A stretch of DNA of 64,000 nucleotides, from the NCBI GenBank assembly GCA_024704765.1, contig JAKMXF010000326.1, forward strand, positions 62,001 to 126,000. Reading direction: 5' to 3'. Source of the DNA: Oopsacas minuta (Eukaryota; Animalia; Porifera). Shown in pieces: positions 44,103-50,956 of the stretch. Each line of letters begins with the position of its first letter. Positions within the stretch are counted from its first letter, which is position 1. The position numbers and the translations under genes are program-made. The notes under the pieces were generated by a model. The model was not told the origin of the DNA. It made no database searches and saw only the letters and a list, made by a program, of their open reading frames with translations.

Positions 44103-46278
44103 TATATTGTGGTACATCAGGACGAAAATTCTATAAATTGAATGTAATTTGGCGTACTTGTAAATATAAATATGAATTTCCTAATGTTTGACATGTTAAT
44201 TCCATCTATTAAATTCAAACCGAATATGGAGTAATGAAGACGTAATCACGGAGGAATCTCTATACTGATGCACCTCCAAATCTAAATTGCTGAAATAGAT
44301 GAAATATTCAATCTAAATGAAGAAAATATCTTAAAAACAGATAACCTTTGAAAATATAAAAAAATGGCATCAATAATTACGTTAAGAATGATCAATTAAG
44401 GACGTCATCAGTATGAGGAATCATGTTATTGAGTGATCAAATTTTGATGGCAATGGAACACTTGTATTTCAGTGGCATGAAAAATTCAGTCCAACCACGT
44501 GTGTAAAGGGATCAGATGATCAAATCTTTGATTGAGAATAAATGAAGAACTATCATATATTATAGCAGGATTTTTCCAGAAAAATTAAAGACTTATGCAT
44601 TTTGGGCCTCTGCCTGTGTTTATCTAGTAATCCAAAATCTATTAAGTAAGTATGTAAGTTGTTCCCAAATTGGACGGTAACACTACTTAGTTCGGAAACT
44701 GCTTTGAACAATCGTAAAGAGCGCTAGGACTACACTTGACACGCATGAAACCAACTGACAAGCAGCTCAGCCGGCGGAATCTTGCACCAGAACGCGGTTG
44801 GTACATCTTTAAGCGACACTCACGAGACCGCCTGACATTAAGCCCTCAGGACACAAAGCACCCCCGACCAGAGCTACAAATGGGTCACATGAAGTGACCC
44901 ATGACACAAGTGACCCATCAAACGATTGAGTTATGGCCAACTGCAAGAGTGCATAAACAAGAGGTCAACAAGGACACTTTTCGATGCTGCTACCACTACT
45001 CTATGGTAAGTGAGACTTCAAACGGAGCACTTTCGTATAACGGCTCTGGTTGAAAGGGACCATTACCATCCCACCGGGCCTGAAAGTAAGGGTGACCAAG
45101 AAAGAGGATTTATCCTGGACAGTACTGGATTGTCGCCAAAATTCGTAAATTGTGTAGGCTTTTGAAATACACTAAAATTGCTCAGGAGTCACAAAATTAT
45201 TATTGGAAGAGAAAGATATTGAGATTATGTAACCATGGATCAACTCCCAAGTAAGATGATGTTCTATTTACCCAAATCCTATATCTCATCCTCTTAGAAA
45301 CTGCATACAGGTATATATATAATACAGCAACCTTCGGAATAAACGAAATCGGCTGTATTCACAAATAGCGAATAATGAGAGTAGTCTTTGTGAAATCCGC
45401 TGGAGCATTTTCACAACAGATCTAGTACGACGGCCAGTCGAAAGGTTTTGTCGTTCATTTACTTACATAACAGGCATTACATATTAGACAGTCACATTTT
45501 TGAAATACTCACCTTGAACCTCTATACAAGTTTTCATCGGTGGAAACCAGGTACCAACGCATATTTTCCATGGGTATCACCTCAATTGCTATGAAAAGTG
45601 CCCCGGTCAAATCTTCATTACTGAAAAATCTCCTCCCACCAAGTTGATCTTTCAGCATTGGGAATACCCCGCATCGCAAATGGCTAGGTCTGGACTGTAG
45701 GGTGGGTGGGGAAGCGTTCCGATATTAAAATTCTCTAAAACCTCACGAGTTCTTAGTGCTGTATGTGATGAAGCATTATCGTGGTGAAGCAGGATTCCTC
45801 GGACATCTGACTTCTCACGTTGTTTTTCGATTGCACGGAATAATTTCGGAAGACATGTTGTCCTATACCAATCAGCGGTAATTGTCTTCCTATCCTCACG
45901 TACAATTCCTTCAACAAATCCATTATTTCTAAAGAAAATCGCCCACATCTACTATCCAACTGATCTAATTACACGGACCTTTGTTGGAGGTAAACCACCT
46001 TCTTCGACCCAGTCCTTAGATTGGCCTTCGTTTCTGGGTCATAGTGGCATAGCCATGTCTCATCGCCAGTGAGTATTTCAGAAACAGCTCTAGAAGTTCC
46101 ATTAGCAAATCGTTTAAGCATAATTTTGCAACAACCCACTCGGCACTTTTTCTGATCGGACGACAAAGAATGCGGGATTCAACGTGCACATAACTTTTCA
46201 AGACCGAGCTTTTTTTGTAGTTGACGTTTATAATCCCCGATGACAATTTGGTTTCACGTTCCAACTGGGCGTAAGTAA

Positions 46279-49200
46279 CACAGTGTGCCAAAATTGCCAT
46301 AATGGCGTATTAGGGTAACCATTACAACTAGGCATGTTTTATGTGGTCTATATAGTAAATCGACACCATAAATTTCAAAAATTCAATTTAAATTTTCCGT
46401 AGTATTACCACTATTGGGAATATGACGTCATTTCGGTGATTTCATTATTTTTAACATTCATGGTTCAATAATATTATTTGTGATTTCTATTATTGAATTA
46501 ATGGTATAAAGTCAAGCTTCCTATTAGAAAGATTATAGCATATCTATAATAAGCTATTATATAATAATGAACCAGGGGTGTAGTTTTTCCCTTTACTACA
46601 TATTGAGGGGATTATACCTTGTGGAAAAACTGTTACTAAATATATAAACTCAATCTCTAATATTCTTTAATTAATTATCATTCTCCAACACTATGCTATT
46701 ATATAAGATATCTTGGGTGCTATTTAGGTCATTTGCACTAGAATTCCTCGTTTTGGTGGATGTAAAACGATTCTGCACTAATAGGGGATCACTACAACAC
46801 AGAAGGCGAACTAGAATATCTCGTACATTGTCAGAGAATGATGTTTTTCTGGCAAGATTTTCCCGATACCACCTCACGAACTTATTACAAGCTCTAAACA
46901 TTCCTCTGATAGATTCTGTAATCCCCTGCCATTATTGTATTCTCCAATAATCTTGAAAGAATGGGAAAGTAGCTTGTGTAAAGAGGGGGTGATGTTCGCC
47001 CATGGAAACTGAACTAAGATGTATTCATACGTTTCGTTACACAATTCTTCCATTTTGCTACAATTAATTAAGTTACCGCTGTTCACAAGTCGTAACACCA
47101 CAGATAGATTAGTCTGGATCTTCTCTAATAAGAGTTTATCAGATAGATTAATCGAGGAAGTCGCCCATTTTAAAAAGTCTCGCTTATCCAAAAAGCAATC
47201 ACGTGCGATGTTCCTAGTAGTTGATGTACCGCCCTGACTTGAAGGAATATCCACACTGAAACTACACTTCTCTAGAAGAATTGCTCGAATCCGCCTCATA
47301 GATGCATTTACTTTGTCATTAGATGGTGACCATACCTTGTGATCCGCATCAAGATGGTATATTAATAACATATACCACCGGAATACACATAGGTAGGCAT
47401 GCAAAGGGGAGGCAGCAATTATATTGATGTCAGATGTGGGTTTGTGAGTTATACCCAAGCGTTGTTTGGATGGGAGTTTGAGGAAGTGATCCTCATTAAC
47501 ATCATCAAAGAGTTGCCAAGCATCGCTAATTAACCTGTTTATGGGGAATCCAGAACGAACCCAGTCAATGCTTTTGATTTCTTCGTCAGATGCAGTACAT
47601 AGATGACAAGAAGCTCCTCCAGCACCATCTAACAGTCCAGCCATTTTGGTGTCAAGGAGAGAACGGACAAAATCAACTTGTACATGTCCTCCTGTTAGGA
47701 ATAATCCTTTCACCAATATTCGGTCGGTTTGGGGATTGACAATTTTATCCATGATAAAATGAACATTATTATAATCCTCTTTCAATGCTATCAACGCAAC
47801 CGGTCTGAAACAAAAGGGGGAATTAGGAGAATGGTTGTAGAAGACATTGTTTCCAAGTGTATCTGCTATTGATAATATTTTGAATCCAAATAAGATGAAA
47901 CATTTAGTACTAAAGACAGGGTTATTATTTTGTTGGTTATAGGTGCGATGAGACCCGGAACCATCTAATCCATCTGATATCTTAACTGTGAGTGGATATT
48001 GTGAAATAGAAATTGGCACTAAGGTTGAAATCAAGCGTTCGACTGTAAGCTTTAGTTTCGAATGATAGGAGATACAAGTTCCAATTGAGAAACCTTCTGG
48101 ATCATGGACTATCTCAATCTCATCAATCAAAGTTATTCCTCTATGATATCTGGAGACAAGCTCATAGGATGGTAATTTGACTTGACATTTGAGGACTTTT
48201 TTAAATTTTTATATTTGCTCGCTCCAATCTCTAAACAGTACAACAGAAAGGCAGATTTATCGATTGGCGCTTTGTGCAAGATTCCACTAAAAGAACCCTT
48301 GTTGATAATCTCCTTACACACTTGTGAAGAATCTCGATCGTAAGAATTGTTAGATATTAATTCTAAAGCCAGAGCAGCTAGTTGTTTAGGCTCGACATTT
48401 TCTCTTTCAGCTAAGAAATGAATATGGTCTAAAAGAATGCTCAGTCTAGATCTGGAAGTTTGAAGATTGCAATCAAGTAAATGCTTTCTAGAATCATGGA
48501 CAATTTCTTCAGAGAAATTTCAACTTTCAGAAATAGAAACTTTACGAAAAGGTTCTAATCCAGGATTGAGTGAAATTCTCTTCTTTCTCGGAATGGAAGT
48601 TGATAGAGGTGCAGTATATGATGGAAGGTCAAATTCTCCCAGGTCTCAAGATCACTCTTCTTCCGATAATACTCTCTGGATGATATAAGGGACTTGAATT
48701 TATATAGAATAGTATCATGTTCTTCCTGTGAAATATTATTATCATCAATAAGATACTGCGTAGTGGCTTTAGGGCTTTTGCCCATTGAAATATAGCTAAG
48801 ATATGCTTCTTTGTTGGTCACAACAGATGCCATTACTTCACTAGGAGCTATTATTAGACAGAAAAAGATCAAAATTATTTTCGTGCATCATCTAAATTTG
48901 CATGAGGGCAAGAATATATAGAATTTACTTGAATTTCAAAAAAATCCTAAAAATACATTTTCCGATTTTTTGTCTGGTCCAAGCATTGATGTACTCAAAA
49001 ATATATTTGTGCACCCCGGTGCACGTCTGAAAATTGGTGTATAATTTCAAAAAAGTAAGCACTATAAGCGATTAACAATAAATTATCGTCTTCTTTTGTC
49101 ACCTGATAGATGCAGCACTCCAAACACTATACTAAAACTAAATATTTCACTCCAGGCCTTTAAAACTAGACAGCCATCAAAATTTTTTGGAAACAATGAT

Positions 49201-49504
49201 ACTTGTAATAATTGCATAAACTGATCTAATATAAGAAATATGTCAAATTGATGATTAACTACGAACGTTATACAGTATATATTTGGAAGAAAATCGTTGC
49301 TAAGGTAGTTAGGTATTTACTCTTGCGGTTAGCTATTCAAAATAATCTACAATATGCTTACTTTAGCTCGCTGTAATCGAAATTCCTATGGGTCATACAT
49401 ACAGTCGTCAATATTTTCCTACTAATTCGACGATGGAGATTCATAAAAACGTAGTTAAATTCGTAATTGAAATTTTGCCTAATACGCCATATCGGCACAC
49501 TGTG
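46279..49504 (-). mobile_element. Transib/RAG1-like transposon with RSS-type heptamer termini
   Basis: Both ends begin CACAGTGTGCC (46279-46289; reverse complement 49494-49504). 5-bp TSD agtaa (46274-78) / agcaa (49505-09). Shared ATGGCGTATTAGG block inside each end. Confidence 0.93.
46671..48833 (-). pseudogene. RAG1-core-like / Transib transposase (~720 aa reconstructed)
   Basis: KISDGLDGSG (D600-like), PNSPFCFRPV, SLLDTKM (D708-like), CHLC, SLHKLLSH, LSEECLE-ACNK (E962-like; 1-nt deletion near 46891), RENLARKTS..LVRLLCCSDP. Lesions: frameshifts near 48620, 48200-48130 and 46890; TGA at 48520-22. Confidence 0.9.
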
Positions 49505-50956
49505 AGCAACATGAGGGTCTTTTGTTAATTCGTCCAACACTAGCTCTACATTTTCGAACGTTTGTTTAATGCTGGGCCTACCAGGATAGGGACCATCTTC
49601 AAGAATAAAATTTTCATTAATAAACTCTGAGTACCATCGCGCAAATATTTTCAAACTAGGAGCTATATTTGGAAAATGCTTCTGCATGGTTTCGTGTATT
49701 TACAAAGGGCTCTCTTAAGTTTGAGTTAAATTAAAATAATAGCGCCAAAATCGCGTGTTGTGAGGTCAGATTCTGGTCGAGGAACCATGCAAGCCATAGC
49801 TTTTTAGAAATTAAGCAATTCGAAAAGTACAAAAGATGAACAAATGAAATTTGTTGTGTATGTAATAATATGGGTCTAAATAGATATAAAACAAACTGAT
49901 TAGAAAAAATATGTGATTTGATAACAAACGATAAATCTTTTGAGTGCCCTCCGTATATATAGCTGATCTGTAATATAGTACAGTGTCATAAATACAAAAA
50001 ACTCATACCCTCATTCGAGAAGGTGAGTTTTCGTTAAAATACAGTATAGCTGAATGACACAAGTGATTGGTTTGTAATAACCATTTTTCGGGTAAAACTA
50101 CCTGTTAGATAACGCCACATCGAATAGATGAAAACTTCTTCATGTCTGCTGCACCAAATACCATAGGATATCATGATCTTAGTCATTCAATACTATGTAC
50201 TTTAGAAATGTGTGCCGCCTTCATGCCAGCAAAGCCGAGCGAAATTAGTCAAATTTGTGAATAATCGGGTTAAGTCGATCAAATTACTAATTTGAATTCA
50301 ATAACATAGTAAATAAAGAACTTGTAACTGCCAAAACGAGTGTAGTTAACCGATCACCGCTGAGATTTACATTCGTAATGAAATGAACCAATTTACCCAT
50401 TCATTATCACAAATTTCCAGACCAAAAACAAGAGGATAGCACCTTTTACGTCAGAAAATCACAGAATTTACCAGGAAGTGTTTGGTAGTAGAAAATGCTG
50501 ATACAAAGTCTCTTCTATGTTCTCCCCAAGAAATTTAAAATGAAATCGGCCCTACCGAATTACCCGAAACCCACAATTTGGGAGTTTTTCCAGAAATTTC
50601 CAATATAATATTTTCATTGTGTTAGGTTTGTATTGGAAATTTATTGTTGTATTTGTCACCAGGGTATTGTTAAGAGGTTTGCACCACCAGCAATATACCG
50701 GAACCGATTTCTGCACAGCCGGTGCGAGGATTTAATGAAAGTATTGTTGTTGATAGGCATAATTATCAGACTCTACTGTTATATCCTTCGATATCTATTC
50801 AAGTTATGTAAATGAGTGTCTATATTTCAGCCTCTAGTATAATATTATCGTTTATTTTAAGGAAAAAAAAGGGCCGTTGGCTCGCGCTTCACGATGAACT
50901 CGGCCAATTGAACGTCGAGGTATCCATTATTTCCAAAGTGACGGTCCCCTTTGAGT

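Follow-up and report, generated by a model that had tools for sequence, protein, structure and literature searches.

Does the transposon at positions 46279-49504 of the stretch analyzed here, with the heptamer of the V(D)J recombination signal sequence (RSS) at its ends, belong to the Transib superfamily or to the RAG1L-RAG2L elements, and is it still able to move? The stretch (hereafter the window) comprises 64,000 nucleotides of the glass sponge Oopsacas minuta (contig JAKMXF010000326.1, positions 62,001 to 126,000), and a preliminary description of it had proposed a single-gene Transib/RAG1-like transposon, a proposal supported by the homology scores, the ends, the target-site duplication (TSD) and the lack of a second gene. 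We conclude with high confidence that the window element is a dead member of a multi-copy, moderately young Transib family of O. minuta (or a very close relative), that it sits in an older Tc1/mariner-like element and that it is Subgroup I-like.

Boundaries, copies and identity of the element

The element occupies 3,226 bp. Direct reading of its two ends confirmed the RSS-type CACAGTG reported at both termini: the 11 terminal bases at 46279 are CACAGTGTGCC, and the reverse complement from 49504 gives the identical 11. Each end consists of a CACAGTG-type heptamer and an inner 13-mer, an arrangement that is conserved across four copies, and the 36-nt terminal pattern had a single match in the window and none in 100 shuffles. 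The two terminal inverted repeats (TIRs) differ in length (Table 1). The 16-nt spacer of the long TIR contains two TGCC-A/T-rich units; this form of the TIR is also found in two other copies (L001 and L003) and its layout is repeated in the sister family represented by L004. The short TIR is identical in L001 and L002.

The Transib is inserted in a minus-strand Tc1/mariner-like transposase gene (~45500-46278 and 49505-~49700) that is older and frameshifted; this gene has a weak match to Pfam DDE_3 and the motifs GDETWLCHYDPETK and HHDNASSHTA...PYSPDLAICD. The frame of this gene is restored once the Transib and one copy of the TSD are removed, the host open reading frame (ORF) then joining as ...DPHVA/YAQLERETKL... 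in one frame. Since excision of these 5 bp restores the mariner-like ORF, the locus provides an internal empty-site test for a 5-bp duplication. The claimed TSD, agtaa/agcaa, was confirmed by this restoration, by the match of its two copies at four of five bases and by the perfect 5-bp TSD of L001; its length is 5 bp throughout (AGTAA/AGCAA in the window, CAGTA/CAGTA in L001 and TAGAG/TAGAG in the sister element L004).

The best database matches to a 418-aa ORF piece of the window element are proteins of O. minuta, and the contigs behind three fragmentary protein matches (93-95% identity, O. minuta) led us to three further copies in assembly GCA_024704765.1, with identities of 94.8-97.1% by BLAST. 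In the partial copies, L002 and L003, homology stops at the termini of the window element. A second line of evidence came from Logan contigs of four public runs of one sample, which are short and collapse copies together; these exit the element at 46278/46279 and at 49504-49506 into at least five different flanks per side. The boundaries and the multi-copy status are therefore confirmed twice independently of the window, by the assembly copies and by the Logan flanks. Copies lacking these termini or a 5-bp TSD, which the preliminary description had named as evidence against its boundaries, were not what we found: the copies stop at these termini, and the TSD of L001 is perfect.

Table 1. Features of the window element (window coordinates) and its copies (L001 to L003) and sister element (L004) elsewhere in the O. 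minuta assembly; identities are from BLAST.
Feature	Position	Strand	Details
Transib transposase pseudogene, ~721 codons, single exon	46671-48833	-	ATG at 48833, stop ends 46671; NBD-like N-terminal region, RNase H fold with D-D-E, ZnC2/ZnH2 ligands
Long TIR, gene-3' end	46279-46314	+	heptamer CACAGTG 46279-46285, 16-nt spacer, inner 13-mer ATGGCGTATTAGG 46302-46314
Short TIR, gene-5' end	49478-49504	-	heptamer CACAGTG 49504-49498, 7-nt spacer, inner 13-mer ATGGCGTATTAGG 49490-49478
Left TSD copy AGTAA	46274-46278	.	flanking bases; loss of one copy mends host mariner-like ORF
Right TSD copy AGCAA	49505-49509	.	one substitution; 4/5 match to AGTAA
Lesion 1: 1-nt deletion, frameshift near codon 70	~48622	-	private; L001, L002 and L003 keep extra T
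Lesion 2: nonsense TGA, CpG transition	48522-48520	-	private; CGA in L001, CGG in L002
Lesion 3: 1-nt deletion in A-run, frameshift near codon 205	~48204	-	common to L002
Lesion 4: 1-nt deletion, six codons past catalytic E, near codon 640	~46894	-	common to L002
Copy L001	L001:4248-7474		97.1%; aligns first to last base exactly; perfect TSD CAGTA/CAGTA; one heptamer mutated to CACAATG
Copy L002			94.8%; truncated copy; terminus CACAGTG
Copy L003			95.8%; internal deletion; terminus TACAGTG
Sister element L004	L004:2328-5439		O. minuta JAKMXF010000332.1; 3,112 bp; 710-aa uninterrupted ORF P0001; CACAGTG at both ends; perfect TAGAG TSD

Transibs were defined as elements of 3-4 kb with a ~700-aa transposase, a 5-bp TSD and a CACAATG-like heptamer, and some families carry asymmetric ends resembling RSS12/23 (Kapitonov and Jurka, 2005; PMC1131882). 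The size, transposase, TSD, heptamer and end features of the window element are canonical for Transib (PMC1131882). Because its size, single ~700-aa transposase, 5-bp TSD and RSS-like bipartite ends fit this definition, the window element is a Transib and not a RAG1L-RAG2L transposon.

The homology evidence is consistent with this identity. The 418-aa piece matched HzTransib (PDB 6PQN) with an E value of 1.4e-16 and mouse RAG1 with 0.1, and amphioxus RAG1L (BbRAG1L, 6B40) was absent from its matches up to a maximum E value of 10. A profile built from 23 relatives scored HzTransib at 205 bits (2e-59), BbRAG1L at 115 bits (2e-32) and mouse RAG1 at ~80 bits (~1e-21). For the intact relative P0001, an AF2 model (pLDDT 84.7) gave a TMt of 0.83 with the HzTransib hairpin-forming complex, 0.74 with BbRAG1L and 0.67-0.76 with RAG1. 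The fetched relatives shared almost no 5-mers with RAG1 or BbRAG1L. There is no RAG2-like second gene within the window element, where the sole frame of at least 90 codons besides the transposase path is an antisense one of 91 codons; the ORF is flanked inside the element by 671 nt upstream and ~407 nt downstream. In an alignment of 84 sequences, the window piece has D, D and E and C, C, H and H at the invariant catalytic and zinc columns, which bears out the earlier report of a ~720-aa frame with the DDE residues, C-x2-C and H-x4-H. No named RAG1L or Subgroup I proteins were among the database search results, and an outgroup sought in bacterial and archaeal genomes was not found.

Three other assignments were rejected. 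Chapaev/CMC requires a TSD of 2-4 bp, and those seen here are 5 bp; RAGL/ProtoRAG membership does not suit a single gene whose profile ranks HzTransib, BbRAG1L and RAG1 in the above order; and a domesticated gene is not expected to be multi-copy and broken, with TIRs and a TSD present.

If the element works like the HzTransib and RAG complexes whose structures are solved, its ~720-aa DDE transposase would, as a dimer, bind two bipartite ends and nick at the CAC border of each heptamer, with hairpins forming on the flanking DNA. The excised ends would then be joined to the target with a 5-bp stagger, and such a stagger would produce the observed TSD.

Lesions of the window copy and mobility of its lineage

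When P0001 was compared with the window by tblastn, four high-scoring segment pairs in three frames were obtained. Placed relative to P0001 and by aligning the copies, the lesions in the transposase frame number exactly four, in agreement with the earlier estimate of about four: three -1 frameshifts and one CGA>TGA stop. The window copy is unable to make transposase as a result. Its ends are intact, however, so that if its family still has an intact transposase, this enzyme could move the copy in trans. Among the four readable copies of the window family none is intact, and the lesions of L001 differ. Read contigs with an extra base at 46892 and 48196 imply that some copies are unbroken at these two places.

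The suggestion that intact copies may exist elsewhere in the genome held in part. All four readable copies of the window family are broken, but the same genome contains an intact element, L004, of a sister family (76% aa identity), with the same 9-nt end asymmetry and the inner motif ATGGGGAAATAGG in place of that of the window family. Its protein, P0001, stands for 33 sequences in a 90% cluster. That L004 is intact and has a perfect TSD indicates that a Transib of this lineage was recently active in the O. minuta genome. These findings extend well-bounded, recently active Transib elements to Porifera (Hexactinellida), and the intact sister element could serve in biochemical assays of how ends are paired.

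One Logan contig joins 46431 to 48095, skipping 1,663 nt and with 3 other letters between, and further Logan contigs break at 46431. These joints look like internal-deletion, non-autonomous derivatives of the window family.

Did the window copy decay where it now lies, or was it non-autonomous from the moment of insertion, as the trans-mobilized copy of a template that was itself defective? The latter is a serious contender, though one we lean slightly against. Two of the four lesions, the -1 deletions at ~48204 and ~46894, are common to L002 at a different locus, a third indel is common to L001 and L002, and an internal-deletion derivative (46431>48095) is present in the reads. However, the deletion at ~48204 is in an A-run, a context in which slippage may plausibly have recurred or the assembly erred, and the mosaic pattern of sharing (window with L002, L001 with L002) is compatible with gene conversion among the copies as well. 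Decay, moreover, went on in place, as the two private lesions show.

We consider it unlikely that assembly errors account for some or all of the frameshifts, with the locus nearer intact than it appears. All three frameshifts are single-base deletions, one of them in the A-run, and the reads hold extra-base variants at two of the sites; since the contigs are short and collapsed, though, these variants could equally derive from other copies. Nor would such errors explain the TGA stop, which is a substitution, or readily the deletion at ~46894, which is outside a homopolymer and independently present in L002.

Relationship to Subgroup I Transibs and RAG1L

In RAG1 the α11-α12 segment of ZnB is the region that binds RAG2. 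Tao et al. (2022; PMC9435367) reported that RAG1L and the Transibs of bacteria and of Subgroup I keep this segment and that Subgroup II, to which HzTransib belongs, has lost it; they also gave a CTT1 tail and asymmetric TIRs as features of Subgroup I, the RAG1L-proximal one. Between C-x2-C and PLH, the window piece and every one of its close relatives have 64 residues, compared with 26-31 in insect-type proteins, including that of Manduca sexta and the cluster containing Sitophilus oryzae. The alignment of HzTransib with our profile was split in two by a gap at profile positions 408-457, across which RAG1 and BbRAG1L align uninterrupted. The window element thus has two of the Subgroup I features, asymmetric TIRs and an α11-α12-equivalent ZnB segment (an insert of ~35 aa).

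The asymmetry of the ends is constant. At the gene-5' end the inner 13-mer begins with nt 15 and at the gene-3' end with nt 24, an offset that is identical in all copies and that, as a spacing of 7 vs 16 nt between heptamer and inner motif, also occurs in L004 despite its different inner motif. The additional 9 nt resemble a second, tandem copy of the TGCC-A/T-rich unit next to the heptamer.

At the N-terminus, the profile-to-RAG1 alignment extends back to RAG1 residue 374, that is, into the nonamer-binding domain (NBD), and the isolated NBD structure gave a marginal profile match (E 0.04). The segment that aligns with the RAG1 NBD corresponds to window positions 48304-48489 (minus strand). 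The position of GRPR reads S-R-K-H in the window, and the AT-hook-like motif itself is therefore not conserved.

A CTT1-like knuckle, C-x2-C-G-x2-G-H-x4-C, is found in about half of the sister families (e.g., P0005, P0009, P0025, and P0036), and the window/P0001 lineage has lost it. The lineage is accordingly "Subgroup I-like, CTT1-less", a designation by features rather than by phylogeny, which it owes to the ~35-aa ZnB insert, the NBD-like region and the unequal ends. In a quick maximum-likelihood (ML) tree, taken without RAG1, RAG1L or reference Subgroup I sequences, the window piece and O. minuta P0001 formed a pair (SH-aLRT 100) nested in a clade of 21 rows (SH-aLRT 100), and the short-ZnB insect clade stood apart (100). 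The preliminary description had allowed that nesting well within an ordinary described Transib family would reduce the novelty of the element; the window protein falls instead outside the insect HzTransib-type group, in a separate long-ZnB lineage.

Several other relatives deserve mention. P0114/P0123, the nearest outgroup of the sponge clade in the ML tree, passes the Pfam RAG1 threshold (47.7 bits) and shares 65% identity with a protein of the krill Meganyctiphanes norvegica, a relationship that fits the patchy, horizontal-transfer-prone host distribution reported for Transibs. A homologue search from P0114, the best Pfam RAG1 relative, returned only its own krill-like lineage. P0226, from ENA metagenome contigs (31 members at 90%), is 1,174 aa long with ~370 extra N-terminal residues, a length that recalls RAG1L, and has a long ZnB insert, a C-terminal CCHC knuckle and a long branch in the tree; no Pfam domain was found in its N-terminal extension. 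For another relative from ENA, L005, no TIRs were definable.

The sponge lineage keeps features that are thought to be ancestral to RAG1L, namely the ZnB insert, the NBD-like region and asymmetric ends. It is possible, if rather doubtful, that the glass-sponge Transibs represent a deep lineage of Subgroup I type, close to RAG1L and mobile to this day, that has retained the ZnB segment to which RAG2 binds in vertebrates, together with the NBD-like region, and whose 9-bp end difference arose by tandem duplication of the 9-bp unit beside the heptamer. If the transposase enforces the pairing of a short with a long end, the intact sister element would offer a simple way, free of RAG2, to study the origin of a 12/23-type rule.

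Some points weigh against the conclusion that the window element is a dead, Subgroup I-like Transib. The placement relative to RAG1, RAG1L, Chapaev and Subgroup I rests on hidden Markov model scores and shared sequence features rather than on a tree, and the CTT1 (CCGHC-type) tail is missing in both the window copy and P0001. The Pfam RAG1 model misses P0001 and the three window ORF pieces, although it does recognize the relatives P0005 and P0114. The TSDs (AGTAA, CAGTA, and TAGAG) are not GC-rich, unlike the target preference of classical Transibs (PMC1131882). One frameshift, being within a homopolymer, may be an assembly error, and the catalysis, hairpin formation and any end-pairing rule that we attribute to the element are carried over by analogy from solved systems.

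It is very improbable that the window element is the remnant of a RAG1L-RAG2L (ProtoRAG-type) transposon that lost RAG2L and is nearer the RAG ancestor than ordinary Transibs are: the RAG2-contact ZnB insert, NBD-like region and asymmetric ends are all kept and Foldseek aligned the P0001 model with the RAG1 core over ~650 columns at most, but bacterial and Subgroup I Transibs have these three features as well (Tao et al., 2022; PMC9435367), the profile favors HzTransib over BbRAG1L by 205 to 115 bits, and neither a RAG1-type N-terminal non-core region nor, in the window copy or the 3,112-bp intact sister element, a RAG2-like ORF is present.

Comparison with known systems

We found no literature linking Transib or RAG1 to Oopsacas, and, going by titles and abstracts, sponge Transibs are the subject of none of the papers found under Transib and sponge terms. 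Porifera are missing from the species table in the supplement of Tao et al. (2022; PMC9435367), and sponges are unmentioned in Kapitonov and Jurka (2005; PMC1131882), Kapitonov and Koonin (2015) and Martin et al. (2020, 2023). Public annotation already names some of the proteins "Dna-mediated transposase" or RAG1 RNase H domain-containing, and the database names for the O. minuta Transib proteins are automatic only. The window copy itself is ordinary, a dead member of a family belonging to a described kind of transposon; what refines the preliminary description is that features of the Subgroup I type occur in a phylum not mentioned by the RAG/Transib papers that we checked.

The window element, still on our reading of it as a dead Transib copy, shares with the Transib superfamily (Kapitonov and Jurka, 2003, 2005; PMC1131882) a single intronless DDE gene homologous to the RAG1 core, TIRs that start with CAC and the lack of RAG2. 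It differs in that its heptamer is the exact RSS consensus CACAGTG and not the Transib consensus CACAATG, in target sites that are not GC-rich and in its hexactinellid sponge host. Among solved structures, the best match by both sequence and fold is HzTransib of Helicoverpa zea (PDB 6PQN, Subgroup II), the Transib that has been characterized both biochemically and by structure; its DDE and zinc ligands recur in the sponge protein. In the structural alignment, however, the two are only 21-22% identical, and the sponge protein has ~200 extra N-terminal residues, which include the NBD-like segment, in addition to the ~35-aa ZnB insert. With the Subgroup I Transibs (ctenophore, Hydra Transib-9; PMC9435367) the sponge lineage shares asymmetric TIRs, the α11-α12-equivalent ZnB and the NBD equivalent, whereas the window/P0001 lineage is without their CTT1 knuckle. 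ProtoRAG and the other RAGL elements have in common with it the 5-bp TSD, the CAC heptamer and the RAG1-like fold, but they carry a convergent RAG1L-RAG2L gene pair where the window element has a single gene. The RAGL transposon AanRAGL (PMC9435367) has a 4/13 layout of its ends, and this 9-bp difference in spacer length matches that of the window element.

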